A DNA stretch of 64,000 nucleotides from Chlorokybus atmophyticus (GCA_009103225.1 RHPI01001037.1:1484551-1548550), one strand, 5' to 3'. Numbered from the stretch's first letter, positions 3,309 to 57,912 are shown. Notes: generated by a model from the letters alone, not told the origin. Program-made: numbers and translations.

Positions 3309-3914
3309 ATGACCCGGCGGCGGGGAGCGCCGCTGGCCATGGCGCAGCATGCGCCTGCTGCTGGAGCGGGGCCGCCGCTCCTGAGAGTGCTGCTTGTTTT
3401 CTCCCTATTATCATTTGCTGCAGGTATGCGAACACTCAATTCCAACCCTAAATAATCTCCAACAGTGCCTCCGATCCCACTGCTTAACCAATATGCCAAT
3501 GCACTTCGCCAGCATCGCTAGGGTTGCACAGCGCTTGCCTTTTGCTAGCATGTAGCGCACTGTAAACGATTCCCCATTGAAGACGGCAAACATGTTTGAT
3601 TTGAGAGGGGGGAGAGCAGGGGAGAGGAGGGGAGGGCACCTCCCCTCTCCCCCCTTCCCCTAATTGGGTAAAAAGGGGCGGGGGAGGGGGGGGGGNNNNN
3701 NNNNNNNNNNNNNNNNNNNNNNNNNNNNNNNNNNNNNNNNNNNNNNNNNNNNNNNNNNNNNNNNNNNNNNNNNNNNNNNNNNNNNNNNNNNNNNNNNNNN
3801 NNNNNNNNNNNNNNNNNNNNNNNNNNNNNNNNNNNNNNNNNNNNNNNNNNNNNNNNNNNNNNNNNNNNNNNNNNNNNNNNNNNNNNNNNNNNNNNNNNNN
3901 NNNNNNNNNNNNNN

Positions 3915-3949
<35 letters not shown>

Positions 3950-6900: not shown

Positions 6901-9900
6901 TACAAGAGCTGTGAATCTTCTAATGATGTGAATGTGCATCAATCTAACTCAACTACCATGCAGGTGCGCCTCACCTTTAGTTGGAACCCACATGACAGCA
7001 ATGGACTTGCCACCAACGTTCCTGAGGATGATGCCCGTCCTGGAGCTGTCACTGTTTGCTTCTACGCCTTTGATGGATATATCGTCAGCACATTCCGCTG
7101 CATCCGTATCACACTGGTGCTAGAAAGGAATATTGTTTGGATGGACCAGCGACCAGCCCTGCTGCCTCTGCGCACTGGTCCTACGCCCGTCAACAACACC
7201 GCATTCTATGTGGCCGTCAACAACACCATGTCTTTCGCCATGGCAGCCTACCAGGGGTCTGGTTTCAGCCCTTTGAGCATCTACCTCACACAGGGCCAGC
7301 TACCGGAAGGTGCCACTCTCACACTGCGGCCAACCGCTCCAGACGCAAATTGGGACCCTGCCATTGTGGATTTCGAGTGGACGCCAGAGATTGGCCAGGA
7401 GTGTAGGTATCAGATCTGCTTCTTGGCCAAGAACAATAGACCGGGTGCAACCCAGTACTCTTCTGACCCTGTTGATGGCTCCATTCTTGATGAGCGCTGC
7501 TACACCATCATTGTGACAGAGACGGTCCTCAACTTTGACAATGTTGGCTATGCCAATGCTGTTGATGTGTCCCCACAGCTCACAGGAGGTTGCGGTATGA
7601 CCCTCAGCGCCTGGGTGTACCCAAGGACTGACCTTGGAAGCACCATCATGCCTATCATGACAGCCGGCTACACCGAGAAGCAGGCAACACTTGAGACAGC
7701 CGTGCACCAGCTGAAGTGGTACACAGTCTCCCCTGTCATGTTCAATGACAGCGCGAATGTGCAGAGGTCTGGCAGGCACTACCAGGTGGCTTACAGCAAT
7801 GGCACCAGCGATTTGCTTGTGACCGACCCCGTCCACTGCGATGCACAATGGCACCACATTGCACTGACCATAGATACAGAGGGCGTGGCCATTCTGTATG
7901 TTGACGGCGTGGCACGGTCGCGCTTCTCTGCTGATTCTCGCGACTTCTTCCAGCCTTCTGTGCTCAGCCTCAATGTGACTCGCGACGATCTGCAGATACC
8001 GTTGGTTGGCAACGTGCTCCCAGCAGATGCTACGGACTTCTTCTACATTGGAGGCTTCCAGGTAAGCATACAACTACAGTCCTTGTGTTATTACTTCAAA
8101 CCTCCTTGTTTGTGACTGTTCGGTCTGGCATGAACTGTGTCTGATGACATTGCTTGTTGCAGAATGACACCTTTGATGGTATGATGGATGAAGTCCGCGT
8201 GTATTCCCGTGCGTTGACGGCAGACGAGATTGGCGCCAAGATGTTTGTGCCATTGGTGCCGTCAGACGAGGAGAAGCTGGTAGCTTATTATAAGTTCAAT
8301 GAAGGCACGCAGGACGACCATGGCTTCAACAAGTACCCTCCCAATGCGGACGGAACTGGCGCTACCGCACCGTTTGCAGGCGAAGTGGCCGCTGCAGCTA
8401 ACCAGCCGCTGCTCGACTACTCTGGGAACGGGCACGACGCTATTCTCTCAAGTGTGTTTCATGCTAACGCTGAGAACTTTGTTGTAACCAGTTTCTGTCT
8501 TTGCTTATCCTGCAACGCTGATCACTTGCCATGCTGCATGCAACAGGCGTTGCTTCCTTTGAGATAACGGCGACCCCAACCATTGGGACTTGTCCGGAAG
8601 ACTTGGTGCCAAACACCGTGCACGTGCATGGTGGGCAGACCGTAGCTGTGAAGGGTGTGAACTTCGCTCAGAGTCAATGGCTACAGTGCTCATTCAGTGA
8701 TGAAGTTGTACCCGCAACCTGGATTAGCACGGAAGAGATACACTGCACGGCTCCAGGCCACCCTGCACCTTGCTCTGTGCCTGTGGAAGTCTCAAACGAT
8801 GCATCCTTATTCTCTGGAAACAAAATCTCATTGTATTACATGGAGATGGCGTTGGAGTTTGATGGCGAGAAGCAGTATGCAGTCTCTGGTGTGGCTGACA
8901 TCCACACGCGCACTGTTGCACCAGGCGTCTGCGATGACATCCACGGGCATGATACTGGATACTCTGTTGGTGGTTGGGTGTACCCTGACGCAAGCGTGAT
9001 GTCCGACCGCATTGTCTTTATGTTCCCCTCCTTCATTCCCATCCCTTACACCATCCCGAGCCCGCCACCACCCAGTCCACCACCTCCATCACCACCACCA
9101 CCTCCTCCACCTTCACCACCATCACCACCTCCTCCACCACCTCCTTCACCACCCCCTCATCCCCCACCGCCACCCCCCGAAGATGGTGGAGGTCGCAAGC
9201 TGCTGTCAACGCTCAGTTACCTGGATTTTCCCGGCATTGGCGTCTTTTACGATGGAACCAACTTCATCTACAGTGACCTGGACGATCACGGCGATGGTGT
9301 CATTGTTGAGGGAGAGGTTGTCGCCAAGCCTGATGAGTGGCACCACATTCTCTTGACGGTGTCACCAGATGGCCTTGGCACCCTTTTTGTTGACGGCCAG
9401 CAGGATGTCAGCTTCAACGTGACTTTGATGCCTGATGACATGGCGACCTGCCAGTTCCACATGGCCTGCTCGCACATTGCACAAGCTCCTCCACCACCCC
9501 CACCAAACCCGCCGCCACCAAGCCCACCCCCGCCTCCCAGCCCGCCACCGCCTTCACCGCCTCCCCCGCAGCCATCTCCGCCTCCTCCAACCCCACCACC
9601 TCCTTCCCCTCCGCCCCCAAGCCCACNNNNNNNNNNNNNNNNNNNNNNNNNNNNCCACCCCCACCACCGTCACCCCCGCCTCCGGATATTGGAGGAGGCC
9701 GGCGCCTGCTCAGCGACTCATCTGGTCACTGCTTCAAGGGTCTCATGGATGAGGTGTCCGTGTGGAGCCGCCAGCTGACGGCTTGCGAGGTCAGTCAGCT
9801 TATGTGGGGCAACATGACCCAGCCGCAGCTGCTCCCTGTTGGTCAAGGGCACGCAATTAATCCGTCAGAGGGTCTCGTGGGCTACTACACTTTCAACATG

Positions 9901-12900
9901 TTCACCGGAAATCTTGTTGATGACTATTCCGGGAGGCAGCACACATCGGTCGTGTGGGATGCTGGCATCCATGCCGCACCAACAGTGGCACCCATGTGGC
10001 AGTACTCAACCATCCCTTTCCTCCCTGCTTGTGTTGACACAGCTGTGTCCCTGCGCAAGACCTGTGCGCCAACAAATCTCTACACGCCTGGACCAGGACA
10101 GCTCATGGAACCCAGGCCTTTGCCCAATAAGTGCACTGCCTTCCACGAGCACCTTGTGGACGACACCATCCCCATTGATGGCGCTGAACAAGTCCGTGTG
10201 CTTGGTTTTGGCTTTGCCAAGTCGCAATGGCTCAACTGCGAAGTCAGCGGCGAGTTGGTACCTGCCACTTTCGTGGACTTCGACATGGTTACTTGCAATG
10301 TTCCCGGATTCGACATTCCTGGAAAGCATGAGCTTGCTGTTTCCAACCAAGCAGGTCAGGAGAACTTCCCGGCGCCTGCATGCGATATGAAAAACTCTAC
10401 AGGAGCGGAGCCATACATGGCGGCTGATGTAGGCAGCGAGTTGCAAGTGATGGAGATGTCCATGTACTTCGATGGCCAGGTGGATTACATCGAGTCGCCG
10501 ATCATCGCCTCGCGGTCCATGGCAGGCGACTTTGAGGGCCTGACACTCGGCGCATGGTTCTATCCTACCGACCCTGACCCATGCCACGAGCAGCCCATTA
10601 TCTGTTACTCTGCGTGCGGAGGCCCACCACCCTCACCACCCCCACCCCCGAGTCCACCCCCACCGAGCCCCAGCCCTCCGCCACCACGTCCTCCACCTCC
10701 AGTGGTGTACACCCCACCGCCTCCTTCACCACCTCCGCCAGAAGTTGGAGGTCGCAAGCTACTCCAAGTCTCCATCGCCAGCTTTGAGAGCCATGCTCAG
10801 ATCTGCATCATGTACAAGGACCAGCGTGTGTACCTCCACAGTGAGGACCCACTCAACTATGGCCGCCTAGACTTCAACCTCACTCTCAGTGCTCCTGCTC
10901 CCATCAATGAGTGGCATTATGCTGAGGTTGTCATTGAGCCGCTGGACTTGGAGCTGGTTGACCCAACCGATCCAATGCTCGCTGGCTACAAGACCAGGTT
11001 CATGGTTGACGGACGCAATGTCTCCGGCTTCGACTCAGAGGTGCGCACACCTACCGTGCCATCTGCATACAGCCACTTCTTTGTGGGTGGTATCTTCTGC
11101 GGTGTGCCTCCCCCGCCACCTCCTTCACCACCNNNNNNNNNNNNNNNNNNNNNNNNNNNNNNNNNNNNNNNNNNNNNNNNNNNNNNNNNNNNNNNNNNNN
11201 NNNNNNNNNNNNNNNNNNNNNNNNNNNNNNNNNNNNNNNNNNNNNNNNNNNNNNNNNNNNNNNNNNNNNNNNNNNNNNNNNNNNNNNNNNNNNNNNNNNN
11301 NNNNNNNNNNNNNNNNNNNNNNNNNNNNNNNNNNNNNNNNNNNNNNNNNNNNNNNNNNNNNNNNNNNNNNNNNNNNNNNNNNNNNNNNNNNNNNNNNNNN
11401 NNNNNNNNNNNNNNNNNNNNNNNNNNNNNNNNNNNNNNNNNNNNNNNNNNNNNNNNNNNNNNNNNNNNNNNNNNNNNNNNNNNNNNNNNNNNNNNNNNNN
11501 NNNNNNNNNNNNNNNNNNNNNNNNNNNNNNNNNNNNNNNNNNNNNNNNNNNNNNNNNNNNNNNNNNNNNNNNNNNNNNNNNNNNNNNNNNNNNNNNNNNN
11601 NNNNNNNNNNNNNNNNNNNNNNNNNNNNNNNNNNNNNNNNNNNNNNNNNNNNNNNNNNNNNNNNNNNNNNNNNNNNNNNNNNNNNNNNNNNNNNNNNNNN
11701 NNNNNNNNNNNNNNNNNNNNNNNNNNNNNNNNNNNNNNNNNNNNNNNNNNNNNNNNNNNNNNCACGCCCCCCACCACCCCCTCCACCTCCGCCGCCAACT
11801 CCACCACCGTCCCCGCCTCCACCCGAGGGCGGAGGGCGCCGCCTGCTGGACGCTGGCTGTGCATCGTCCTTTGCACGGTTCTTTGAGGGGTACATTGACG
11901 AGGTCCGTGTCATCAAGTCCGCGATGCCATTGCCAATGTTCGACCGCCTCCCTGACGTAGAGAACATTACCAACCCCATTGCGTACTGGCGTTTCAATCC
12001 AGCTGATGCTCCGAGCGCTGTCCCAACCATGTATGCCCCTGCGCCATACACTGTTGAAGACAGCTTTGGGCTTGGTGCCTATGGTCACGTGTGGGCCGGC
12101 ACCGTACAGAGCCCCATGCCTATCAGCAGGCCAGCCAACCTTGACTATGTAACAGCGCCTTGGGAGCCGGCAACGCTGTATGCATTGGATGCATCATCAG
12201 TCAACATTGATGGCAGGGTGGAAGTGACCGCGATTGGCTGGAACCTCGCTGAGAGCCAGTGGTTGCGATGCGCTTTTGGTGCAGAACCCATGTTGCCACC
12301 TACTCTGACAGATGCCATCCTCAGTGCATCCACTGATGTCACCCGTTACTTCATGCCGTCTCGCACACAAGTCAGTGGTACAGAGATGACTTGCCGCGCG
12401 GCATCTTTGCCGGTGCCGGCTGTTGTCAATGTCCTGGCTGCAAACCCAGGAAGTGCAGACGGTGTGACAGTGCTGTACCGGGAAGTGGCAATGACATTTG
12501 AGGGTGACGCGTCGACCAAATCCAAGCTCGTCGGTGACAGCATCAACGAAGGAGATGAGCTGGAGCTGACGTGCCCTGAGGGTATGCGCATTGAGGACTT
12601 TGTCTTTGCCAATTTTGGCAAACCAGCTGGCAGGTGCACTCACAAGGTGAGCATTACTTGCGACGGCACTGAGACAGAGGCTGAATGTGATGTCGCGGCC
12701 TTTGAGCTCAACCCGCGCTGTCAAAGCAATGACACAGACGTGTTCTCTGCGCTCCGCGACGATTGCATCGGCAGAGCATCCTGCACCATTCCAGCCACTA
12801 CGGACATGTTTGGCCGGCCATGTGCCGGAGACAAGTGGCTGTCTGCTTCAATCATGTGCTCAGACAGGTGGTCAACCAAGGACTTCATGATTGTCAATGG

Positions 12901-15900
12901 CATTCCAGACCTGCTGGATGCAGCACCAGAGTACTCTGTTGGCGCCTGGCTGCACCCATACCAGAAGGATGGAGGTTCCATGACAGTCTTTGCCTTTGGA
13001 ACCAGTGACAGGGACAGTTCTAAGCTCCTCTGGACAAGCAATGCAAACCAGCTTGGGCTGTTTGTCTACTGGGACGATTGCATCATGGACGTGCCCATGC
13101 GACGGAAGAACGGCGAGCTGCTGTGGCTAGCCCCAGATCAGTGGTACAACGTGTTCTTGACCGTTGATGCGGACAACAACGCACACCTGTACCTCAACGG
13201 TGTCGAGACAGCTACCTTCTCCACCAGCTGCCGTCCGGCTTCCCCTGACTTCTTGGTGTTCGGCATGAACACTAAGCAGACCGAGCAGCCACACGAGTTC
13301 TTCGCTGGTCTCATGGATGAAGTCTCAATCTACAACCGTAGCCTGTCAGCAGAAGAGGTGCTGGGCAACACTTGCGGCACACTCTCTGTGGATCCTCAGG
13401 TGCCAAACCTCCTTGCATACTACCGCTTCAACGAGGAGAGCGGCATAGCTGTGCCCAATGCTGTCGCCACTGCCAACACGGATGGTGTGTTGGCATACTC
13501 CTCAGCAGACATCTGGAACCAGGCCACCCTCTCCTATGAGGTGGATGGCCTGGTGGTTGACATCCATCCCACCTACACCTACATCGGAGTCCCCTGGTCT
13601 TTGCCAGTCATCACTCTGATCAAGCCAGACAGCGGCCCTGTCCTCCCTGGCATGCCAGCAGTCATCTCTGGACTGAACTTTGTGCCTCGCTCAACAGTTT
13701 TGTTGCACAATGGAGAGCCTCTGGACTACACTTTTGTCAGCGACCTTGAGCTGGAGATTGAAGTGCCTGAAGGTTCTGCTGATTCAGTGTCGGAGATCAG
13801 CGTTGTACAAGGATTGGAGTCCGCTAATGACTCGTGCAGTGACGTGCCACCAAGCAAGGTCACGTACACTCAGGAGCTGACCATGGTGGACTTCACTGAC
13901 CGCTTGTGCGCTTACTACCCGCTGTATCGTGATGCTCGGGACTTCAGCAACCATGGATATGATGGCAGGCTTCTCGGCAACCCGAACATCACTGCCGATC
14001 GCAATGGTTTCCCGTCACAGGCATTTGTGTTCAGTGCCGAGGACAGCATATCAGTGTCAGTCTGTGACGGTGCTGTCTCCATCGCAATGTGGGTCAACTT
14101 TGCTGACGAGCCTGTGCGCGAGTACAGCGGTTGCGCTGGCTTTACCACAGCAGGCAACTGCCAGGTTGAAGATGTTGGCGCCACAGTCAACCTCGCTTGG
14201 AAGTTTGTTGCCATCACCGAGAACGACAACGGCGGTCGCATTGCTTACCTCAACGCTGAAAGGATTGATTTCGACTCCTCTTATCTCGCACCAGTGTTTT
14301 CTGCCTTCAATGGTACCATTGGCGGCATGGACATTCTCATTGATGATGTCTTCGTGTACTCGCGCCCTCTCAGCCCAGCGGACATCATGCAGCTCTATCA
14401 AGTACGCGAGTATGCGTTAGACTGCAGCACAGGCGCTTACGCTTATGCTCCACGCATTGTTGCCAATCCTCTTGGCACTGAGGGTCTCCACATCACGTAC
14501 TACGGCAACAGCAAGCAAGTCACTGACGTGATCTCCACGATTGAACTCGACTGGGAAGATGAAGGTCCTCTGGGCCTCGAGGTCAATGATGGATGGAGTG
14601 TGGTGATTGAAGGCTTCCTGTACTCGCCCTACGAGGACGAGTACACATTCTCTCTCACTGCGGATGATAGCATTGGGCTCTGGATCAACGGCGTGGCACT
14701 GGTCAACAACACCAACAATACTGGCGGTCCCATGACTTACAGCAAAACGTTGTCGCTGGACGACAGGACTTGGTACCCCATCAAGCTGATGTACACCGAC
14801 CGATCTGGTCCCGCAGCTGTCAACCTGAAGTGGAAGACAGACAGCAAGACCATTCAGCTGCAGACCATTAGGCAGGAGTTCCTGCGCTCCGGTGTGTCTC
14901 CTTTCACTGTGGAGGCTTGGGTTTATCCCTTCACTGTCGAAGGCTCCCAGACCATCATCGGCAAGCGTCTTGACGACGGCACCAATGGCCTTGGTGTTGG
15001 CATTGAAGACGGCGGTGTGAGTGTCTCAATCTTTGTTGATTGCGACTGCGAGGGTAGCACCAAGTGCACCAAGTACCGCGACATCCACAGCTGGAAGTCC
15101 AAGGTGGTCCCCATGCAATGGCAGCACATTGCTGCATCGTATGACGGCCTCACCTGGGCAATCTACATTGACGGAGTTCTCACCGATTGGTTCACGTATG
15201 ATAGCATCAAGTTCTTCCCTGAGAGCGACCGCCCGCTTCTCGTGGGTCTCGAGTCTGATGACATTGTCAAGTCTCCAGATGATGTCAGGCCATTCAATGG
15301 CCTGATCAAGTCCATCAGCCTGTATGACGTTGCTAATGCAACAGCCGCTGACTTTGCTGAAGGCATGGTGTGCCCGATCAAGGAGCCACGCCCGCATCGC
15401 ATCTACCACTTGGCACTCAATGAAGGCATCGGCAGTGTTGCATTGGACTCCAGCAAGTGGGTGTCTGACCTCACAGAGGACCCCAGCTCGCTCCCTCGCT
15501 ACGCTGATGCTGTCATTGTTCCCGGACCTGTTGGAGACAGGCCAACACCTGCTTGGGCGTTTGTTGAAGGCACTGAGTATGAAACGGACCCTGCCAACGT
15601 CACAGTGTATGGTACTGTCCTTCACGAGACCATTGTTGGCCAGTGCAGTGCGTTCACCATTGTTGCATATGACTCCTGCGGTTACATGAAGCGCAACGGA
15701 GGAGATGACCTGAAGGCGAAGATCATCGGTCCCATGCATCTGCACAGTGAGATTGATACATTGACTGTGGGCGACGGCATTGTTGACCATGATGATGGCA
15801 GCTACACTGTCAGCTTCAACAGGACAGTGGCAGGGTACTACTTCATTGACGTCCTGCTTGGTGAAGACACTCTTTACCACAACAAGACCTACATCCATCC

Positions 15901-18900
15901 AGAAGCAACAGATCCCACCATGACTTACCTGTATGACTCTGATGAGGATGGCTTCAGCCTCGATGCATTGACTGTTTCACATGCTGGCATCCCTGTTAGC
16001 TTCAAGGTGCAGACTGTTGATGTGTACAGCAACCTGAGGACATCCGGTGGAGATACAGAATGGTCCATCATCTTCAATGGGCCATATGACTTTGCCGGCA
16101 ACTGGACTGACAACGGTGATGGCACCTACACCATCAGCTACAACGCGCAAGTGGCCGGCCAGTATGAGATGTTCATCTCGCTGTGCGGGCAGCCCATCTG
16201 CCTTTTCGGTGGTGCAGACTGCTGCGGGAAACAAAAGTCCTCCCGGGCGGCTTGCAGTCTGCTGTCGGTGTCACCGCCAGCTGGCGCAACCGGCGCTTGC
16301 CCATACTGCCTCAATGTTACTGAGGGTGACTCCTTCGCCACAGCACAGGATGGCATCAGCGCAGTGTTCCCCGACACCGATGCCTTAGACTTGGAGGGTC
16401 CTTTCACAATCGAGGCATGGGTCCACAAGGAAGAACCCATTGTCGGTGCTCCTGTTGCAGTGGAGAAGCAGTTTGTTGTCAGCAAGCAGTCTGAGAGCAG
16501 CGGCAAGGGCTACTGGCTTGCACTGGTGCCGACCGTCGATGCGAGCGTGTTCACCGTCGAGGCTGGCATTTACATCGGCGCTGAGGAGTTCCGAGACATC
16601 TCGTTTGACGCACCCATTGTAGGATGGAACAACCTGGCTGTGACTTACAATGGCACTGAGTTTAACCTCTACCTGAACGCCGAGCTTGTCAACACCACCT
16701 CATGGAACTACACTATCATCGAGTACCAGCGGAGGAACAACCAGGCCGTCAGAGTGGGTCGTGGCTTTGAGGGTGCAATCGACGAGGTCAAGATCTTCAC
16801 CTCTGTCAAGTCGCCGTCAACAATTGCATCCCGCTTCGCATGCCCTCTCAATGTCGAGGGCGGGATGCTGCAAGACTCCACCCTTGCTGCATACTACAGG
16901 TTCAACGAGGGTGAGGGCATCTTCACCATGGACTCCAGCGCTGAAGGTAAGCCAGGATGGTGTACAGAGGTCACAGCAATTGTGCAGAGTGCATTTGCAC
17001 AACCAATCTGTCGATGCAATTGTGAGCATTGTGAGCAGTGTTAGGGATGTTCAACCTCCATTGTATTTGCAGGCAACCATGGTGTGCTTGGGTTGATCTG
17101 CACAGAGGCAGATGAGGGCAGGTCTGCACGCTTATCATGCCCGACAGGATACATAATCAGCGACATCTTATACGCCAACTATGGCGCCAACCTTGGCAGC
17201 TGCGGTGCATACGAGGTGGATGATTGCGCTGCAGACGACACGGCCTCCGTTGTTAGGGCAGCTTGCATTGGCACTGACCACTGTACTGTTGAGGCCACAA
17301 ACCATGTCTTTGGCAACCCGTGCCGTGGAGTCACCAAGACTCTTGCCATCAACGCTGTTTGCTCGAGTTCTGATCCGAGCAACTCGCCTTGGGCACACGA
17401 AACCGCCCCAACTTATGTTGGCCGAGCCTCTACCCAAGTGAAGCTGCTATGCCCATATGCCGACGCCTTCCCGCTTGCGCTTCAGGCTAATGAGAACCAA
17501 AATTGCTCCACCTGGAGCTTGGACAAGGCTGCTGCTGGCGAACCTCTGGAGCTTGCCATTGTCGCCGTCGACGTGTGCGGCTTCATTGACTATGCCCCCG
17601 TGCAGGTGAGCACTGCACTGCATGCTAAGCCGTGGCTGTACTCTGATCACAGCACATTGCGTAGCTTCACTATGTCATGCACACAGGTTGGGTGCATATT
17701 GTTCAACAGCCAACGTGTCTGCAGGAATCCTTTGAGGCCACAGTCACTTACCCAGGCCACATTGGTGCCATGACCGGAGAAGAGCCTGTCTGCTACCCGA
17801 CATACGACGACGCAGTGACAGAGAGTGCGTCTGTGGCATGGGCAGGATTAAACCCCACGCAATGCGGCCAGTTCCACAATGTGTACCTCCTCTCTTACAC
17901 CCCATCACTTGCGGGCGTGACCACCCTCAACGTCACCCTCCGGGGAGAAGAGGTTTACTCAGGCCCTCTCATGGTGAGAGCAGGGGAGATCGCCGCAAGC
18001 AGCTCTGTCATGGGAGCTGAGGTTGCCATGGTGGGAGTGCCATCCAGACTCATCATCACCGCCAAGGATGCTTTCGGCAATGACATTGCTTTCACGGACG
18101 GCATCGAGAGACTATCAGTCAGCATTGATGGTCCCGCACCTGTCTTGGGAGACATCACCGCAGCACATAACTCAGAGGGAACATACTACCTCACCGTTGC
18201 ATACCCCACAGCCGGCACCTATGAAGTGTCCGTGCTCCTTGACAATCAGCCATTCCGCTCATCAACTGTCAATGTGTACCCTCTCGGCGCAGTCGAGGTG
18301 ACTCCCCTCGAGTCCGAGACCCCGTCTGCAAGGTTTGAACACACTGCGGTTGAGTATAATGGAGACATGTACATCTTCGGAGGTGCTCAGAAGGACAAGA
18401 CCTACTTGTCGGAGACGTGGAAGTTTGCCACCGGTGTGAACGACTCCAAATTCAGTTACAGGGTGCCTATTATCGTCAACGGCGACATTGACAGCGCATA
18501 CAACTTGCAGCTTGGGATCGACACGGCCGCACTGATCACAAATGGCGCCTTGCGGCCTGATTGTGGGGACGTGCGCTTCTTCACTAAGTCTGGTGAAGAG
18601 TTGTCGTATTGGATGGACCTGATGCCTGGCTGCAACACTGCCAACACTCTGTTCTGGGTGAATGTCGAGAGTGACAAAAATTTTTACATGTACTACGGCA
18701 ACCCCGACGCAGAGTCCACAAGCACAAACAGCATCTTTGAGGTGTTTGAAGACTTTGAGTACGAGGGCAGCCCGCTGGACCAGGCCACAAGCCCTCAATG
18801 GAGCCTTGACGCGTATGATGACTGCAATCCAACATACTACATGGCCGGCAAGAAGGAGTCCTTCTACACGACTTCCAATGTGTCGATGCACGGCTCGCGC

Positions 18901-20559
18901 AGCCTCAAGGTCGATGCGACAGCATTCCCTGGCGGCTCAATCAAGCTTGACCTCGCCGCGTACTCCAGCCTGCACGACAACTTTGTTGTCAAGGGCTACA
19001 TGTACGACGGCCATTGTTACGCTGGCAAGCACTGGATCAGCACCGACTTTGATGAGTGTGACGGTGATGCCGTCAGCATCTTTGAAGCACATGGTGCCGG
19101 CATCAACACCGCCGCCAGGGCCGAGAAGTACATCACCACATACCCATGGCAAGCCTCACCTGTCGATAGAGCAGGTAAACTTCTTTCCATGCACCATATG
19201 TGGTTGCACGGTTGGCTGGCATGTTTCTCTCAATCTCTAATTGTGTATCTGTGCGCAGCTGGCTGGCACACTTTCACCATGTACAACGATGGTGAGGCGG
19301 GTGTGGTCATTGCCATTGACGGCGTGGTTGCAAGTCAGTCCAAGTTCAAGTCAACCCTCAAGCAGCTGTTCATCCGAGGCGGGTTGAACTCCACACAACT
19401 GCAAGGCAGCACATACTGGGACGCCATATTTGCAACAGTCCTGCTGCCGAATGTGAATGCGACGGCCAACTTCGATGATGCTGAAGCTGTTTCATACGCA
19501 CCGGGAGTGATGAAGTGGTCACAGGTACTTGCTTCCTATCTGTTGCATGCACACCTTACTTGACCTTTGCAACAACTGTGTACACTGAACCAACGATGCT
19601 GACACACTGTGTCTCTCTCAGGTCACAACCGCATCAAAGCCAAGCGCCCGCCAGGCGCATTCGGCAGTTGTGTACAACGGCTCTATCTTCATCTATGGTG
19701 GCGAACGCAGCGCCTATGAATACTCCGACGTGTGGAAGTTCTCTTGCAAGCATGAAACTTGGGAGTTTGTGCCGACCTTCAGTGAGGTGCCGCCTGCACG
19801 ACACGACCACTCCGCTGTTGTGTACAAGGTACTGCGGACACCTTCTTTACATGCGTGTGCGCGTGCATGTGTGTTGTCCTGTGACATACTGCTGTGCATA
19901 ATGTGTATTGACATACTTTGTTGTTCCAGGGTGGAATGTATGTCTTTGGTGGCCGCAAGCCGCAGCCACTCGGAGACTTCTGGCGCTACGACTTCGCCAC
20001 GAAGAGCTGGTTGGAGATCTCCAACTACACGCAGGGGCTCTCATCACGCTTTGGTCACACCGCGGTCGTGCACGACGACATGATGTACGTGTTCGGTGGC
20101 TACGTCGCCAATGACGGTGCTCTCTCAGACGAGCTATGGACGTTCAACCTCACCTCAAGCAAGTGGAACCTGGTTGGCCCGCGCACGGGACGGTCGCAAG
20201 AGCGGGGCGTGTCCAGCTATGTTGAGGACCCGAGCGAGGCCATCATCTTCCCAATGAAGATCCCCGCCGCGCGCTACTCCCACAACGCGGTGGTTCGATG
20301 CAGTGCAGGACAGACTGCGTGCGCGATGTACATCTTTGGTGGCGCAGGCGGGTCCTCCATGATGCAGCCACTGGATGACGTCTGGAAGTTTGACTTCACG
20401 AGCAAAGCATGGAGTGTGGTCTATGAGACTACTGGCGTCAGCCGGTTCGACGCTGCAGCGGTGCTTGCGGGTGATCATCTGCTATTGTTTGGAGGTCATG
20501 CGGGACGACAGTTCTACAGCGACCTCCAGTCATTATTTATAGCTGACTCAGGGCTGTAG
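3309..20559 (+). CDS. Giant (~4,800-5,000 aa, estimated) extracellular multidomain protein: N-terminal hydrophobic segment, HFRYGTISW domain, cadherin-like repeat, multiple LamG/pentraxin and IPT/TIG units, four Ser-Pro rods, two SUEL lectins, PA14, about four filamin-like repeats, DUF2341 and a Kelch propeller
   Basis: ATG at 3309 (alternative 3339) and TAG at 20559. About 16 GT-AG introns join phase-consistently, e.g. donors at 3424, 4176, 6265, 6900, 8061, 16947, 17607, 19175, 19525 and 19829. Motifs include SHFRYGTISW, FQIAAYDPD, WHHIALT...LYVDG, F.G.MDEV.VYSRAL, YYRFNEG, CPEG..I..ANFG...GRC, DNGDGTYTISY and GG-containing Kelch repeats. Frame breaks occur only at the N gaps 9627-9654 and 11133-11762. 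Confidence 0.88.
3601..3949. repeat. G-rich/poly-G tract flanking an assembly gap (N 3696-3913) in intron 1 of the giant gene
   Basis: GGGGAGAG-type runs precede the gap and a ~36 nt G homopolymer follows it. Confidence 0.8.
4660..4710. repeat. Intronic inverted repeat (22 bp arms, 1 mismatch, 7 nt loop)
   Basis: tgcacgagcagcagctcatgca (4660-4681) pairs with tgcatgagctgctgctcatgca (4689-4710). Confidence 0.85.
9055..11825 (+). repeat. Four extensin-like SPPPP/PPSPP rods within the giant CDS (~9055-9180, ~9487-9685, ~10620-10740, ~11105-11825)
   Basis: CCA/CCT/CCG-rich codon runs translate to PSPPPPSPPPP. Rods 2 and 4 contain N gaps. Confidence 0.9.
12540..12865 (+). other. SUEL/Gal_lectin domain 1 in the giant protein; a second copy lies at ~17100-17365
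   Basis: EGDELELTCPEGMRIEDFVFANFGKPAGRC...DDCIGRASCTIPATTDMFGRPCAGDKWLSASIMC, and EGRSARLSCPTGYIISDILYANYG...CIGTDHCTVEATNHVFGNPCRGVTKTLAINAVC. Confidence 0.85.
14470..14870 (+). other. PA14 domain in the giant protein
   Basis: GLHITYYG...IELDW...WSVVIEGFLYSPYEDEYTFSLTADDSIGLWING...WYPIKLMY...GPAAVNLKW matches the PA14 pattern. Confidence 0.85.
18451..18725 (+). other. DUF2341-like domain in the giant protein
   Basis: FSYRVPIIVNG...LRPDCGDVRFF...ELSYW...LFWVNV...FYMYYGNPDAESTS matches the DUF2341 pattern (YR..I, D..DIRF, L.YW, WV, YMYYGN). Confidence 0.75.
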
Positions 20560-24038: not shown

Positions 24039-27000
24039 CTAACCTGGTGCGTCTGATACTTCCACCAACAGTTCGCTAACACGCTCAAACGCAGCAAGCG
24101 TGTTTGAATCAAAGCCTCCTGCAAACTGATGCACGCGATATGCAAACCTAACAGCAGATACCATCAACGCGCTGATCCTGTCTTTGGAAGCCTGAGGTCC
24201 ATTCAAACCTGCACACAACAGGTGGTAAGTGAAGGGTCCAAGTTCACGGCAAACCCACTGTTGTTGACGGCAATGTACTTACCAATTGTCTCTGCTTCCT
24301 TTATGACCTTGTTCATGTACGCTGCAGCCATAGAAGCGGTAGACCTTTGTACCCTTAGCAAGGTCTTGTAATCGAAAGGGATGCCTTGCTCCTTGAATTT
24401 CCTCTTCGTACCCTCCTGCGGTATCACACAAAGGGGTCTGTAACTTTGCATAATCTTGCACTGGTAATAGGCCAATCATACCACCCTTGACCCGCAGGCA
24501 TACCTGCCCTCGTTGCAATGCTTCCACTCGGGACTGACACGCTTCAAAACTTGTGACCATCCTGGCGACGACATCCTCGCATTTGGTGCTTCCAAGAGCA
24601 CCTATCATGTTGGCGCCATCTCGCATCTCTGTCTCCTTGGCCTCGAGATCTCGTTGCATTGACACGGCCTCTCGTAGGATATCAGCCTGCGGTGACGACA
24701 CATGTCATTCCTGTGCTACATCCTTACAGCCATGATGCCTTGTGCGTCAACTGGCTAACATGTCCTTACCTTCGCCTCAGGCCACTCAAAGTGTTTCAGC
24801 ACAGCGCGCTCATCTACAAGTACGGACAGCTCCTTGTCCATATAATCCACAAACGCCATGGCCTGCAAGTGATACCAGGCTCGCAACCAGTTGTGGCCGT
24901 GTCAACAGCACGGTCACGGTTGTGACCGTGCTGTTGACACGCCTGTGGCATACTGCACAGGGAACGACTGCACAGGAGATGTCAAGCCACATTCTGAAGG
25001 TGGAAACTGGGACCTCACCTCTACCATGGTAATTGGTTTGAACTTGCGAACTTCTCCGGCTAATTGCATGATCATGTTGGCATATTCCTCCACATCTTTC
25101 TGAACAGCCTGCAACCAAACATACAGCTTGTCATAGACTGACACCGGCCATGGACAGACACCAGATGACCTCTGGCCGGGTTCTAGTCCCTTGCTCCTTT
25201 GTGACTGTGCCATACTGCAAACGCCATACCTTCACATATGCGCTCTTTGCTTCAAGCTCGCCTCTTACATCCGCCTTGGCATCCTATTCATGTGCACAAC
25301 AGCATTAGTGCCTTCTGTTTGATGGAACCATGTGCAGAACAACCAGCAAGGTCTGTACCCCGTTGGTCTGATTTCCTTGTCCAAATTGTGCAGCAGCATT
25401 AACACCGGTTGCATAGCCTTGTGGCCGATTGAGGGCTCTATACAGTTCCAGCACCTGTGACCAATCCATGATCACTTTTACCAGCAACACATGCATGCAA
25501 TGCATGCTCTGCATACCACAGCATGTGCAATCTCGTACCTTATTGGCTTTCTTGAACTCATCTTGTTCGGTCTTCTTCGGCGTTATAATCGGCCCAGGTG
25601 GAGGCACAAAGCCAGGTGCTCCATTGGCAGTGGGTGCCTTTAGTGCGCCTGGCATAGGAGGTGGCGGCGGCGGTGGCGGCGGACCTTTGCCATTGGCTGT
25701 CATGTAAAATCGTCAGTCGTGTGTGCAGAAGCCATGCAGAGATTGTGCACGTAAACAACTCAGCAATCTTGTGCGTCCTGCCAAGTTAGATGCAATGCCA
25801 ACAGACGCGCTCATCTCAAACGGCAGTGATCACACACCACTAGCATGGCCAAGTCTGTTGCAGGGCATAAGCAGCCAACACCAACCACCAGCTTACCAGC
25901 AAAGAATGGTAGACCTCCTGGAGGTGGAGGTGGAGGGGGCGGAGGGGGCGGCCCGCCAGGTTTCAAACTAGGTGCACTGTTGCTCTTGGGCATGCTGCTC
26001 GCATTAGAGTCCAACAAACTACTGGCACTGGCGCTTGACGGCAGCTTGAGAAGCCCTGGAGGAGGCGGTGGTGGAGGTGGGGGCGGCGGTGGACGCGCAC
26101 CTCCGGCAACTGGCTTGAGCAGACCAATGGGAGGAGGAGGCGGTGGTGGTGGTGGAGGTGGAGCCATTGGTGCCAATGGACTGGATGTTTCAGGCTTCGC
26201 TGGCTGCAGTGTTGGCGGCGGTGGGGGAGGCGTGGGAGGAGTTAGGGGAGTGGGTGCTGGAGGGGCCTGTGTGTACGGACTCTCATCGCAAGGAGCTTCA
26301 CGCGGCGTGGAGGGTGCACTGGACTTTGCAGGAGAAGGCCCTTCTTGTGTTTTGCCGACGTACAAATGCAAGGACAGCGGTGGCTGCATTGAAAATGGTG
26401 TTACAACGCTTGCACTGGCCATAGGCGAAGTAGCTATCTCTGTTGTTGCAGGCTTTGGGGGTGCTGGCATGGCTTGTGGCACTGAGTCCACTGCCACCGA
26501 CATGCGCGTCTTGGCAGGCTGAGGTGACTCGCTCGGCAAAGGTGACGGCGGGTCGGATGGCAATTGCTCGGGAAGCGGCCAGCTGTGGATGTCAACGTAC
26601 GGACGCGCAGGTGCTGGCGGTGAAATGTCATCAGCGCTCTGGACATACCGTAAAAGTGAGAACACATGCAGATGCTGGTGCACAAGCTGCAGGAAGGCTA
26701 GTTTCACACTGGCATCATCCATGAGGTTGGGTAATACCGAGGGCAAAGTCAAGGAGCAAGACATAGCAACCACTGTGCAAGCACCTTCAACAGACGTACC
26801 TTCTGCAACGTTAAGCCCTCTGCAGCAAGGTCGGCCAGACGTTGCCGAGTTGCTTTGTCAAGAGCAGGAGATCGTGGAGTTGCAACTGCATCCACAACTG
26901 GAGGTGGCGCTGTCACGAACAATGTAGACATAGCAGGTACTGTAGGAAGTGGTTTCTTGTGGAGTGAAGATGCAGTGGGAGGTTTTGGGCGCCTTGGAGG

Positions 27001-28574
27001 CAAAGTAGCAGCTGGAGGATTTGAAGGTGCAGATGCTTCAGCATCCATGATCAACTGCAGCGCAAGGGCAATCCATTCTCAGAAGGGTTCATGCTCACAA
27101 CATGCACAACTGCGTCACAATTGAAACAGCATCTGACCTGGTTGAAGACAGGGCCAGATATTGAGCGCGATCTGGATCGTGGAGTTGTGGGCTTGCTGTT
27201 CTCCACTGTTGAGTCTTGACTGCGTGGGGACTTCGGCTCTTGCGCTTGCGATGAAGAAAAGAAGGCAGAAGCAGCTGCGCTCTCCACGAGCTCCGAAAAA
27301 GGGTCACTCGGGTGAGCGAGTTTGAACTGTCCAAACCTCATGTGAGAATGCGCTGACCGTGCAGAGGACAGCACTTAACCAAGCTCACAGCAGGTCGAGG
27401 AAAGAAGCTGACCTGCCAAGGGTAAAGAACATCCAGCGCATCTGGTGTGTCACTTCCATCATAGCTGCTAGTGCTGGCTGCATCATCCCCAGTTGCTGCA
27501 GCTGGCGGAGCCAAAGCCGCAACTGGCGGTGACATTGGCTGAGGGGACTGCAATCAACAGAAAGGTTGGTTACAAGCTCCCTGTGTGACTGCAGCGTACT
27601 GCTGGGGCACATGTACCGTTTCAAGGTTCGCTTGCAATGAAGCTGCTATGGCACGTTTCAACGCATTCTGCTCCTCAATCTTTGCACGTCTACGCATGTC
27701 TGCTTCATGTCTCTGCAGTGCACAAGGATGCTTAGTGCTAAGCAACCCAGTTGGAAACAAAGCTTTACTGGAGGCTCACCGCTTCCAGCTGAGAAAGATT
27801 GACCGCATGCGCTAAACTGCCATTGGTGTCAGGTGCGGGAGCAGCCCCAGCTGGCTCCCGCTCAGGCAGTTGCGCAAATATGCCATGATATGCAGGTGCT
27901 CGTTGCTCCTTCTTAGATTTTTCCAGGGCAATCTGAAGCAGAGAATGATAAGCACCTTCCCGAATGACAAATACATCAGCTTGATCTTTGACGCCTCTAT
28001 ACCAACCTGCAGCTCTTCTTCTTCTGTTAAAGCTGTCTTGAACTTGGAAAGATCAGCGGGTGTGCCCTGCACAAAAAAGCATGAAGCAACGATTGCTGAT
28101 ATGCAGATTGCAGGACAGCGCCGCACAACAGTATGAGGAACAGTGTATGCTGCACTGTGTGCTCACTTGGCTGCGCACAGAGCTTGCGGGCGACGTCACA
28201 GGTGTAGCTTGGCTGGAGGAGTTCACACTTCCTGAAGGCCAACGCTACAGTCAACCATAACAACTTCAACTGAAGACAAACTACTGTACTGAACACCCAC
28301 AAACCGCGCCCACATCGTGCATAAGAATGTTGCAATGGTATAGATCCGCATACATGCGCACCTTGGTCTGTTCTAGGCGATGAAGTTGCTGGGTACGGGG
28401 CACTCATGCCGTGGAAAGAGTGCATACGAGGTTTGGGTTGTACACCACCCAGCGCTGCCGGCATGAAAAGCGATCCAGTGCTGGGCGTTTGTTGGTATGT
28501 AAACGTGCCCATTGCTGGAGATCTGTACCACAATCGGCTAAGCTTTGCAACACTGGCATAGCTATAGCAACCAT

Positions 28575-28668
<94 letters not shown>

Positions 28669-30807
28669 NTCGGGAAAGAGGCGCAGTTGCTGTCAGCACA
28701 TCATAGTCAGTGCATACGCAGGTGTTCTCAAGAACTACGCAGATTGATAAGTAAGGTACATGCAATACACAAGCCATCACGACACGCAACACAGACTTAT
28801 GGCGCACTCCTTGCAGCTGCTAGCGGGCAACGGTATGGTAATAAGAAGGTTCTAACATATTCCAGCCCCGTCACATGTATGATGGAAGAGGAGGGGGGNN
28901 NNNNNNNNNNNNNNNNNNNNNNNNNNNNNNNNNNNNNNNNNNNNNNNNNNNNNNNNNNNNNNNNNNNNNNNNNNNNNNNNNNNNNNNNNNNNNNNNNNNN
29001 NNNNNNNNNNNNNNNNNNNNNNNNNNNNNNNNNNNNNNNNNNNNNNNNNNNNNNNNNNNNNNNNNNNNNNNNNNNNNNNNNNNGGGGAGGGAGGGGGGGC
29101 AGTTTTTCATTGCTCACATGTGATCTGCAAGCAAACTTACATCTCTGAAGGGCAGTCCAGGGCGCCCTGGTCGTCGGATAAGGGCATGACCTATTGACAA
29201 ACACATCATTGTCAACCATGTCCTGAACGCAGCAAGGGACGGTGGTGTACAAGAGCAGACCACTGCTCACCTTCACGGTTGAGCGAGTTGTACAACTGCA
29301 GAAATCGACGTGAGCAGTCTGTCCCAGACGTGACCGTGGCCCACTCCAACAAGTAGAGCTGCAATTTCTCTGCCGCAACCTGCTCCTGCATCCCTCCCTG
29401 CAGCAGCGAATAACCATAAGCACTACGTGCATATGACCCTGCGTATGGCTAAGCGACAGCTGCAGCTATTATGTTACTGGTGGCAGCCCTGGAACACAAC
29501 AACTGATGAGGTAACACATGACGCCAGCAAAGACCGACAACATACACATCTACACTGCACGCTCCGATGCCCACCCCTTGGGTTGTACTCAAGAATAGGA
29601 AAACACTATCATACTTGCGAGCCAGCAGCCTTCACTAGTGTCTTCAACCTCAGAAGCCATTTCTTGGTTGTGACAGCCTCCCAAAATCGGCAATCAGCTG
29701 TTTTGATAGTGGCGTCAAGAAACTGCACAGTTAACAGTGAGTTCCTCCTGTGCAAATGTGCACTATTTGCGCAGAGTGTACTGAATCACAAGTACACACT
29801 AGGTACCTGTAGCGCCAGCATGCGCTGCTTCACATCCTTTGACTTCAACGGTTTTTTGAGGAACTTCAATGCAATGGTGGGTGCACTGTATAGCAAGTTT
29901 TGATATCAACTAAACAACCAAAGCGCAAACACTGGGCCCTTGCGTGAACCATACAATTGTCCACTTACGCATTCTCCCCATCCCGTACTCGATTTGCAAA
30001 CTCTTGGATCGCCCCTAAGTCGCCCTATCACCCAACATATCAGCCAACCATGACTCTCTAGTCTTAAAATCCTGTGTATGTTATGAATAACCAGATCCAA
30101 TCCTTATATAAAGCCAATTATATGCGTCACTTTGCATGACTGGTCACGTATGTTTGTATGAGTGAACAGCACACAATTGAGCGTGAGCACAACTTTGCAC
30201 GCAACGGTGTGCGCCCAGCCTATGTGTAGCAGCTGAAGTACAGATGCATGTGTCCCTTCCGGCCATGTCGTGCTGTATGTCACTCAGGTTAAAATCTGCG
30301 TACTATGCAAGAACCGCAGTTGGGGCTCCTACACAACCGGAAACGGCTTCTTGCAACTTGCATGCCACACCAACTTGTGGCTCGGTGTGGCACAGTAACA
30401 CCGTGCTGTACTTGTTCAGGTTTATTGATGGGTAGACCAATCTACAGTATGACAACAGTGGCACGCTTTGACACAGTACGTACGACACTGCATCACAACT
30501 GCATTTGATGTACGTTTGCAGTAACCAGCAACATGTGTGTCGTCAGATTTTCGCACGCTGTGCTGATTGCTGTCGCTCTTGAATAAATGAACTGCTGTAG
30601 GATAGTTTTAAGTGTGTCAAATCTGTCGGCGGAATACGTGCATTGATGTTGAAATAGCACATCCGGCTACTTGACGGACTGAAGGATTGTCCAACATCTC
30701 TTTACCTGGCCATGCGCATCCGCAGTGACGGCGAGGTTCACAAGATCTCTAAAGATGGTGCCGTTGACGTTGGCGTTCAGCAGCCGCTGCTTGTCCAAGA
30801 CTCCCAT
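24039..30807 (-). CDS. CHUP1-C-domain protein with N-terminal VHS domain, two UIMs and polyproline (FH1-like) tracts
   Basis: C-terminal exons carry CHUP1 signatures: VLELYRAL, DVRGELEAKSAYVKAVQKDVE, DKELSVLVDERAVLKHFEWPEAKADILREA, FKEQGIPFD, SAVRFAYRVHQFAGGFD. Upstream exons splice in phase through the polyproline region to UIMs TEEEELQ|IALEKSK and EEQNALKRAIAASLQ. Exons at 29270-30807 give a VHS-like domain (ALKFLKKPLKSKD...LALQ|FLDATIK...FWEAVTTKKWLLRLKTLVK...EKLQLYLLEWA...LYNSLNREG). The VHS-to-UIM join crosses a gap and poly-C tract (28577-29100), and one VHS-internal join is unresolved. Confidence 0.75.
28577..29100. repeat. ~90 nt C homopolymer (28577-28668) and a G-flanked assembly gap (N 28899-29083) in introns of the CHUP1-like gene
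   Basis: Directly visible in the sequence. Confidence 0.85.
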
Positions 30808-31186: not shown

Positions 31187-31196
31187 TTTAGGGTTT
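31187..31196 (-). promoter_or_regulatory. Telo-box (AAACCCTAAA) upstream of the VHS-CHUP1 gene
   Basis: Exact motif just upstream of a GC-rich, probably 5'UTR exon (~31040-31150). Confidence 0.4.
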
Positions 31197-56875: not shown

Positions 56876-57912
56876 TCTTTGTCAAGTCTATGTAGGCACA
56901 TCGTAACAGGTGGTAAGGGTCCATTCGCCGTTTGTAATTGTTCCCGGTCCTTTTGCTTTGACGGGGGGCTAAGCGGGCAGATATGCCCTCCGTCTCAGCA
57001 ACGGAGGAAAGTTTTACACTCAACCTAACCGTCCGTTACATGTTACAGTCACTGCCCTCACCCACAACGATGCAGTGTAGGTCCGTTTCAAAGCTTCCCG
57101 CTGTTAGACAAACGGGAGGTCTTGGGTTCCGGCTTCTAACGGAGAGCCAAACGGCAAGTGCAAATGCGACTTGCAGTTCAAAAGCTTCCGGTAGAAGGTG
57201 CCTGATAAACGGGATGAAGGCCGGAAAACGGCAAGCGAGTGGGCCATTCAGGTTTGATTAGCATCTGTTTGTTTTGACCAGGGTTCTGGCAAGCACGTGC
57301 GAGGCGCACGTGGCAGCCGGAGGGGAGTCTGCCGGGATGGCAAAGGCTTGTGGTGCGTTGACATGCGCTGAAACGCATGCAGGTCGTGTAGTGCTATCGG
57401 GCGACATTACGGCAGCAAGTTGCTGCCGTAATGTCCAGCCACTGCGCATAAGGGGGGCCAGTCAGTCAGTCGAGGCGTCGCTGTTGTCGTCGTCGTCGTT
57501 GCTGGCATCCACTGATGCTGAGACTTCCGGCCTGACGCCACACCTGAGCAGGTGGTTGCACCTTGGTCTGCCTTGCCCTGTCTCATGCCTGCTTGCCTAC
57601 CTCATATAACCTGCGTGTTTTGGTCGTAGTGCTAGTAGCGTTATCAGTCCTAGCGCTGGTCTGCGCCCCCCCGCCCCCCCCTCCCTCTGTTGTTATACCA
57701 TTGCTCGTGTGTTTGCTTGCACGCCTTTGCACCTTTTGCACTCAATTGCTTTGTATAGCTTGCATGCATGTTCCCAGGTCTGGTAAGTCTGCTGTCTGAG
57801 CAGTCAAGTCTGAGCATGGAGTAAATCTTATGCGTGCGCTTGCACTGTTCTTGTAGAATTGTGGGGGACCGTGGCAACCAAAGAAGCCACGAAGACTGCC
57901 TCCGGACAAAGC

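Follow-up and report, generated by a model that had tools for sequence, protein, structure and literature searches.

The 64,000-nucleotide (nt) stretch of Chlorokybus atmophyticus DNA analyzed here (GCA_009103225.1, RHPI01001037.1:1484551-1548550; below, "the window" means this whole stretch) carries, on the minus strand between positions 30807 and 24039, what is most likely a single gene with a VHS-like domain, two ubiquitin-interacting motifs (UIMs), a polyproline region, and a C-terminal domain of the CHUP1 type, in that order. The window sequence is eukaryotic, with approximately 52% G+C and short GT-AG introns. For the gene model, open frames and splice sites were drawn by eye in the window and then checked with a script. 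All four elements were confirmed on the minus strand at the places where the initial annotation had put them, and its claim that the CHUP1 domain and the polyproline tracts splice in phase to the two UIMs held as well: 17 exons (28522 to 24039), joined at canonical GT-AG sites, yield one open frame of 943 amino acids (aa), ending with a TAG at 24041-24039. The head part comprises five exons (30807 to 29141) and gives 164 aa from an ATG at 30807. The parts of the locus are as follows.

30807-30680, 29885-29807, 29722-29615, 29397-29271, and 29190-29141, minus strand: exons 1 to 5, VHS-like part (gene model and profile match)
28899-29083, no strand: assembly gap of 185 N separating the VHS part from the remainder, in an intron or in a hidden exon
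28577-28669, no strand: second sequence defect, an N at 28669 plus a 92-base homopolymer at 28577-28668 (C on the plus strand, G on the minus strand)
28522-28362 and 28231-28167, minus strand: exons 6 and 7, Ser/Pro/Thr-rich linker (GT-AG sites and frame)
28027-28007 joined to 27932-27906, minus strand: UIM1, TEEEELQ / IALEKSKKE, interrupted by the intron 28006-27933 (consensus and Pfam)
27629-27679, minus strand: UIM2, IEEQNALKRAIAASLQA, in exon 10 (consensus and Pfam)
26800-27547, minus strand: exons 11 to 13, low-complexity linker (gene model; Pfam scan without a match)
25656-26230, minus strand: FH1-like region with five polyproline runs, 3' part of exon 14 plus exon 15 (run scan)
24051-25577, minus strand: CHUP1 C-terminal domain (FH2-like; Pfam PF26700, IPGAL1_C), exons 15 to 22 (blastp, profile, and PDB matches)
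31189-31196, minus strand: telo-box-like AAACCCTA(A), (AAACCCTAA), a consensus match only, approximately 390 nt upstream of the ATG

The 5' end (exon 1) is the least secure piece of this model, since the frame from exon 1 into exon 2 is kept only by a weaker donor, GTCCGT at 30679, and the GTAAAG donor 26 nt earlier (30705) is out of frame. The VHS exons can thus be followed from the ATG at 30807, as had been proposed, but not through the GTAAAG donor of exon 1, and exon 1 receives no support from homology statistics. Further upstream, the telo-box-like element would be compatible with a promoter region of a VHS-UIM-CHUP1_C gene.

The assignment of the tail to the CHUP1 type was borne out over the full length of the domain. 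Residues 659 to 940 of the 943-aa part matched positions 3 to 270 (of 271) of a profile built from seven CHUP1 C-terminal domains, with a score of 286 bits. In blastp, single high-scoring segment pairs ran across seven exon junctions, with the best agreement in the Chlorokybus protein P0002 (44%; E = 2e-69), followed by a picoalgal open reading frame (ORF), P0048 (40%), and by Mesostigma P0039 (36%); against land-plant CHUP1, identity was 33 to 37% over approximately 275 aa. Exons 19 and 22 on their own matched PDB entries 8WAF/8WAG ("Protein CHUP1"; E = 2.5e-10 and 1e-7, respectively). From exon 20, only a spurious CBS-domain match (E = 0.011) was obtained in PDB, and no exon gave a Pfam match to FH2. 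Immediately upstream of the C-domain, at 26230-25656, lie five runs of 6 to 12 prolines (proline makes up 37% of residues 430 to 660 of the C part), and the relatives carry polyproline at the matching place. In Arabidopsis CHUP1, actin polymerization requires both R820 (actin) and F958 (dimer), as found by Kong et al. (bioRxiv 10.1101/2020.01.14.905984); the arginine equivalent to R820 is kept in the window protein (LVDER, within 24820-24776). Judged by its sequence, the tail is a member of the CHUP1/IPGA1 C-terminal-domain family (PF26700, IPGAL1_C), the Pfam family that database entries of the relatives also bear.

A search for the same architecture elsewhere, which the initial annotation had called for, succeeded both in gene models of Mesostigma viride and in uninterrupted ORFs of marine algae. 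When the full library was searched with exon 22 (HMMER), 40 proteins were retrieved. Among them, the Mesostigma gene Mv12749 encodes a protein of 957 aa (P0039) and a longer isoform of 1107 aa (P0041), with a weak VHS match, UIM, polyproline, and the C-domain; the two differ in their first exon and by a proline-rich insert of approximately 150 aa in the VHS-UIM linker, at the place that corresponds to the window gap. Through a cluster look-up and a scan of metagenomes, we further obtained single ORFs with an N-domain, two or three UIMs, a coiled coil, polyproline, and CHUP1_C, namely P0048 (901 aa; marine algal contig L001, 176-2881), P0060 (1098 aa; TARA contigs L002-L003, L002 438-3734; its 90% cluster includes a fragment from Prasinoderma singulare), and the ORFs on marine algal contigs L007 (3204-5663) and L018 (1019-3757). 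In these five divergent relatives, the Mesostigma models and the marine ORFs alike, the order is identical: VHS-like domain, two or three UIMs, polyproline, CHUP1_C. It is thus kept in a basal streptophyte (Mesostigma) and in marine green-algal contigs, of which one is Prasinoderma-like. Their VHS-UIM linker, at the place of window exons 6 and 7, is not conserved and spans 68 to 283 aa. Word-seeded homologue searches (with whole P0039, with the C-domain region of P0002, and with a full-length alignment, A3) returned almost nothing, and no named chlorophyte orthologue (e.g., from Micromonas) was among the matches listed. Those with P0039 and A3 covered 8000 scored candidates, a ceiling reached probably due to low-complexity words crowding the candidate list.

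Both UIMs of the window protein fit the consensus (acidic residues, followed by hydrophobic-x-x-Ala-x-x-x-Ser-x-x-acidic), by eye as well as by regular expression, and UIM1 is indeed split by an intron, as claimed beforehand. In Pfam, UIM1 matched UIM (E = 0.014, 15.6 bits) and UIM_2 (E = 0.006, 17.0 bits), and UIM2 matched UIM (E = 0.019, 15.2 bits). A homologue of UIM1 is found at the equal relative place in P0039, P0048, P0060, L007, and L018. In a motif scan across the family, UIMs occurred only in VHS-bearing members and in neither land-plant CHUP1 nor Chlorokybus P0002.

The head required a more indirect route. Pfam scans of single exons yielded one weak UIM match only and no VHS, no GAT or other domain was found after the VHS exons in the same scans, and a six-frame scan of the window with a profile of the relatives' N-domains gave no single significant exon. 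However, the spliced N part scored 17.8 bits (E = 1.4e-7 at Z = 1) against a profile of the N-domains of the five relatives (A2), residues 48 to 153 aligning with profile positions 54 to 167, compared with 7.7 bits for the best of 1,000 shuffled controls; the exons that hold the matched residues (exons 2 to 5) had been drawn before the profile existed. Comparison of the window N part with the relatives' N-domain profile in hhalign likewise gave a P value of 6e-6 over 153 columns. When A2 was in turn compared with all of PDB, the top matches were the VHS domains of Tom1 (1ELK; E = 4.7e-5), STAM2 (6.5e-4), and Hrs (5e-3), and Tom1 again, and the GGA VHS domain (E = 0.36) ranked below two non-VHS chance matches. 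The best Pfam VHS match among the relatives' scores given below, that of P0039, had an E value of 0.002 and covered profile positions 39 to 134 of 141. While the proposed scan for VHS failed on single exons, the window N part belongs to the relatives' N-domain family, and through this five-sequence profile it is linked, indirectly and in two steps, to the VHS domains of Tom1, STAM2, and Hrs. Structure prediction, also proposed at the outset, was run on relatives and was divided in its outcome. The Mesostigma N-domain was predicted to be a helical bundle (predicted local-distance difference test score [pLDDT] of 80, predicted template-modeling score [pTM] of 0.74), and all 13 of its 13 best PDB matches were VHS domains (STAM, GGA, Tom1, and Hrs; template-modeling [TM] score of 0.64 to 0.82 at 2.2 to 3.0 Å), whereas the L007 domain did not discriminate between VHS and another fold, as discussed below. 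On these models, the N-domain family is a divergent VHS-type superhelix, and we claim no more for it than that. The N terminus of the window protein looks hydrophilic and VHS-like.

The relationships within the family were assessed in a maximum-likelihood tree of 20 C-domains with long branches and an arbitrary root. The window sequence grouped with Chlorokybus (support, 93/86) and both of these with Mesostigma (94/93), so that its C-domain has its nearest relatives there and lies outside the clade of all land-plant CHUP1/IPGA-like sequences (97/92). A separate group was formed by the picoalgal and Prasinoderma-like VHS-UIM forms (94/94). Since the head is present in two separate algal groups, the sequences suggest that it is old. 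The "fusion" of the initial annotation is most likely real as a joined layout, which the relatives display as well, but it represents an old, conserved architecture rather than a fusion peculiar to this genome. Chlorokybus P0002 (Chrsp21S03329) showed a weak match to the MIT domain (residues 213 to 238; E = 2e-4; 21.9 bits versus a cut-off of 30). MIT is another ESCRT-linked module (ESCRT, endosomal sorting complex required for transport); the match may reflect a head swap or an artefact of the gene model. Two further metagenome contigs, L021 and L022, contain short CHUP1_C ORFs (approximately 300 to 400 aa) with hardly any N-terminal extension. In the tree, the branch leading to L021 is very long, and L022 was left out, as it covered too little of the domain; both may represent non-green (e.g., cryptophyte-type) genes of the CHUC class described next.

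How, then, does the window protein compare with known systems? With CHUP1 (Arabidopsis AT3G25690; PDB 8WAF/8WAG), it shares a proline-rich, FH1-like region followed by the FH2-like C-domain, but in place of the N-terminal hydrophobic envelope anchor, the long coiled coil, and the F-actin-binding region of CHUP1, it has the VHS-like domain and two UIMs; land-plant CHUP1 ORFs (L008, L009, L012, and L013) begin with a hydrophobic segment, and the window protein does not. Kong et al. (bioRxiv 10.1101/2020.01.14.905984) present CHUP1, whose origin they call unresolved, as the sole described representative of a class of actin nucleators specific to plants; in it, polyproline recruits profilin-actin and the dimeric C-terminal part nucleates or elongates filaments. 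They apply the term CHUC to C-halves of CHUP1 without its N-half, known from Micromonas, Coccomyxa, Guillardia, and also land plants, whose function they regard as unresolved. The window gene fits this definition, as given there. The land-plant proteins IPGA1, IPGAL1, and IPGAL2, from which the Pfam family takes its name, have the C-terminal domain in common with the window protein but are coiled-coil, microtubule-associated proteins without VHS or UIM, and they have been reported to be absent from algae. Formins follow a similar functional logic, with polyproline tracts preceding a nucleating domain that dimerizes and with an N terminus that varies and serves targeting or regulation, but the window protein has no sequence similarity to FH2.

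On the side of the head, STAM and Hrs, whose VHS and UIM bind ubiquitin (PMC12051064), offer the same succession of an N-terminal VHS, a linker, and one or more UIMs, and the STAM2 and Hrs VHS domains were among the top profile and fold matches. Tom1, and with it the TOM1/TOL group, supplied the best PDB profile match (1ELK). However, FYVE, SH3, and GAT had no Pfam match on any window exon, and of the P[ST]AP, clathrin-box, NPF, and DxF motifs scanned for, none was conserved in the relatives, P[ST]AP and the clathrin box being absent from the window protein altogether. Compared with STAM and Hrs, then, the predicted protein lacks FYVE, SH3, the GAT-like heterodimer core, P(S/T)AP, and the clathrin box and carries an actin-nucleator tail instead; compared with TOM1/TOL, it lacks the clathrin box and has UIMs in the place of GAT. 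Because all of these parts are missing from its predicted sequence, the window protein is a member of neither ESCRT-0 nor the TOL family, and of the label "ESCRT-0-like" in the initial annotation, only the VHS-plus-UIM layout survives. The background to that label, i.e., that plants lack Hrs/STAM and use VHS-GAT TOL proteins, agrees with a 2025 review in which ESCRT-0 of the Hrs/STAM type is confined to opisthokonts. In full-text literature searches that combined CHUP1 with either VHS or "ubiquitin-interacting motif", no description of a VHS-UIM head on a CHUP1-type tail came up. A search for CHUC found the term in the relevant sense only in the preprint of Kong et al. (the other match was an unrelated wheat transcriptome study), and the passages searched in that preprint mention no VHS-like or UIM head and do not state the nature of the N terminus. 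The combination had been presented as undescribed, which holds for the head in the literature searched but not for the tail, since the tail-only class had already been named.

Two defects, both in the same intron, lie between head and tail: the 185-N gap and the N-plus-homopolymer tract, which precedes the acceptor of exon 6 by approximately 55 nt. The last codon of exon 5 is complete at a strong donor (GTAAGT; last base, 29141), and the acceptor at 28522 requires two upstream bases. A plausible GT-AG path across the gap had been proposed, and in-frame paths do exist (29141 to 28542; 29118, with a GTGAGC donor, to 28522 or to four other acceptors; and 29137 to 28514), although not between the strongest sites. 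We dropped the existence of such a path as evidence of continuity, since with seven working donor-acceptor combinations, a fit is to be expected by chance and proves nothing. Both flanks of the gap are C/T-rich on the coding strand, and the gap could fall in an intronic pyrimidine tract or in a proline-rich exon. It may hide a linker exon that is not conserved and possibly proline-rich, because its flanks score like the proline-rich coding sequence of this gene (0.58 bits per codon, versus at most 0.11 for ORFs in the other introns), a short ORF beyond the gap runs up to a GTGACG donor (last base, 28875) whose phase is the one needed by the acceptor at 28522, two other gaps in the window fall within proline-coding blocks of a neighboring giant gene, and the longer Mesostigma isoform carries its proline-rich insert in the corresponding linker. 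More generally, low-complexity C/G tracts seem to break this assembly, given that the gaps at 9627-9654, 11133-11762, and 3696-3948 are located inside proline-coding, C-rich blocks or next to homopolymers (34 Gs at 3915-3948), which bears on how the gap at 28899-29083 should be read. A polyadenylation break near the gap had been named as a sign of separate transcripts; scans for TGTAA and AATAAA showed none in intron 5, but, with none in the 3' flank either, they were uninformative. Neither the continuity of head and tail nor the frame across them can be proven from the window sequence alone.

The case for one gene comes instead from the relatives: five divergent members of the family hold head and tail in one ORF or gene model, in the same order. 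Since the short metagenomic ORFs among them need no splicing to be invoked, a mis-scaffold or a chance neighbor would have to reproduce order, strand, and spacing, and it is very unlikely that a mis-join arose by chance with just this conserved order and orientation. We therefore regard the single-gene architecture (VHS-like, UIMs, polyproline, and CHUP1_C) as highly likely, and the proposal that a VHS-UIM-UIM head and a CHUP1 tail belong to the same protein stands on the relatives' order and the profile match, although the gap leaves its continuity in the window itself unproven. The fuller reading, which we consider probable, is that the gene encodes a CHUP1/IPGA1 C-domain protein of at least approximately 1,100 aa, of the CHUC type and without a chloroplast anchor, that would serve ubiquitin-directed actin assembly. 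For the mechanism taken by itself, built as it is on analogy, our confidence is lower, and we put it forward tentatively. By analogy with STAM, Hrs, and Tom1, the VHS-plus-UIM head would recognize ubiquitin (mono- or K63-linked) carried by membrane cargo; the polyproline runs would recruit profilin-actin, and the dimeric FH2-like domain would nucleate or elongate filaments, both as in Arabidopsis CHUP1; in this way, actin would be assembled where endosomes, the trans-Golgi network, or the plasma membrane are marked by ubiquitin, and not at the chloroplast envelope.

Several observations weigh against this reading. At the junction, both sequence defects fall precisely between head and tail, and joining the strongest donor (29141) to the strongest acceptor (28522) is out of frame. 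In the head, the scores of the relatives for Pfam VHS (PF00790) fall below the cut-off of 29.8 bits (18.6 bits for P0039 and 13 bits for P0060), and the predicted N-domain of picoalgal L007 (pLDDT of 92, eight helices) is about equally similar to the GGA3/Hrs VHS domains and to CID, at a TM score of approximately 0.6, which is not significant. Both UIMs, for all their agreement with the consensus, score 15 to 17 bits, under the 21-bit Pfam cut-off (PF02809/PF23625), and the motif scans found no lipid-binding or ESCRT-I-recruiting element. In the tail, the residue equivalent to F958 is a tyrosine (VRFAY, within 24152-24108), as it also is in Amborella P0040. Moreover, since the land-plant relatives IPGA1/IPGAL are microtubule-associated, actin activity of the predicted tail is not guaranteed. 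Finally, the nearest C-domain relative, Chlorokybus P0002, has neither VHS nor UIM.

On a rival reading, the locus is one gene whose head is regulatory and does not target the protein. The UIMs might promote monoubiquitination of the protein itself or, like the regulatory domains of formins, might autoinhibit the tail. A partner other than ubiquitin (an acidic dileucine peptide, as for the GGA VHS, or a CID-like ligand) would be bound by the VHS-like domain, and the tail may act on microtubules, as IPGA1 does. The strong divergence of the N-domain, with the picoalgal model equal to VHS and CID folds, the microtubule association of IPGA1 in the same C-domain family, and the failure to find lipid-binding or ESCRT hand-off motifs all fit such a role. 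However, the profile prefers ubiquitin-binding VHS domains (Tom1, STAM2, and Hrs) over that of GGA, a VHS followed by a UIM is the layout with which STAM binds ubiquitinated cargo, and the polyproline together with the kept R820 equivalent points to profilin-actin. We consider such a regulatory head unlikely.

Alternatively, two units might lie side by side, through scaffolding or simply as neighbors: a VHS-only or truncated TOL-like gene at 30.8 to 29.1 kb and a separate UIM-polyproline-CHUP1_C gene from approximately 28.5 kb. The position of both defects and the frame conflict of the strongest sites would then find a ready explanation, exon 6 does contain an in-frame ATG, retention of intron 5 would lead to a stop after 8 codons, and some database ORF calls of relatives (P0021, P0047, and P0077) start downstream of the VHS part. 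Those short relatives are, however, truncated calls of the same ORFs, the window N part resembles specifically the N-domains of the relatives that join both parts in the same order and orientation, and the VHS exons are followed by neither GAT nor any other domain, all of which makes two units improbable. That the head recognizes outer-envelope proteins bearing ubiquitin (a CHLORAD-type mark), tethering actin assembly to the plastid in algae without the CHUP1 anchor, is very unlikely: kinship to CHUP1 and the documented ubiquitination of plant chloroplast proteins favor it, but the VHS-plus-UIM proteins characterized to date act on endosomes, and Kong et al. (bioRxiv 10.1101/2020.01.14.905984) have argued that small swimming algae bearing a CHUC gene have no need of chloroplast movement.

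Elsewhere in the window, two other long coding regions were observed. The first, at 5465-20559 on the plus strand, is the giant, intron-poor gene mentioned above, encoding a multi-domain, probably extracellular protein with TIG, several Laminin_G_3, SUEL lectin, PA14/GLEYA, filamin-repeat, DUF2341, and Kelch domains and with interspersed extensin-like SPPPP blocks; one stop-free stretch in it measures 2051 codons. The second, at 57859-60069 on the plus strand, is an open frame of 737 aa with armadillo repeats (Pfam Arm, 264 bits) in many near-identical tandem units.

Returning to the reading of one ubiquitin-directed gene, the VHS-UIM-headed form looks, from its sequences, like an old, undescribed branch of the CHUP1 family, and green-lineage proteins other than the VHS-GAT TOLs also show the STAM-like VHS-plus-UIM layout. 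At its present gathering thresholds, Pfam fails to pick up this head, since databases tag VHS-UIM-CHUP1_C proteins with PF26700 only. The head occurs on both sides of the chlorophyte/streptophyte split, and we speculate, as a possibility still short of an even chance, that the whole CHUP1/IPGA1 family of green plants began with the VHS-like, UIM, polyproline, and CHUP1_C architecture, which would have nucleated actin in the endomembrane system under the direction of ubiquitin. The chloroplast anchor of CHUP1 and the microtubule-binding heads of IPGA1-like proteins would then have replaced that head later; Chlorokybus itself may have swapped in an MIT-like module. If the head of the conserved algal form does read ubiquitin, ubiquitin recognition and actin nucleation would be physically linked in one polypeptide, and an origin of CHUP1 through exchange of the head of an older nucleator would become testable.

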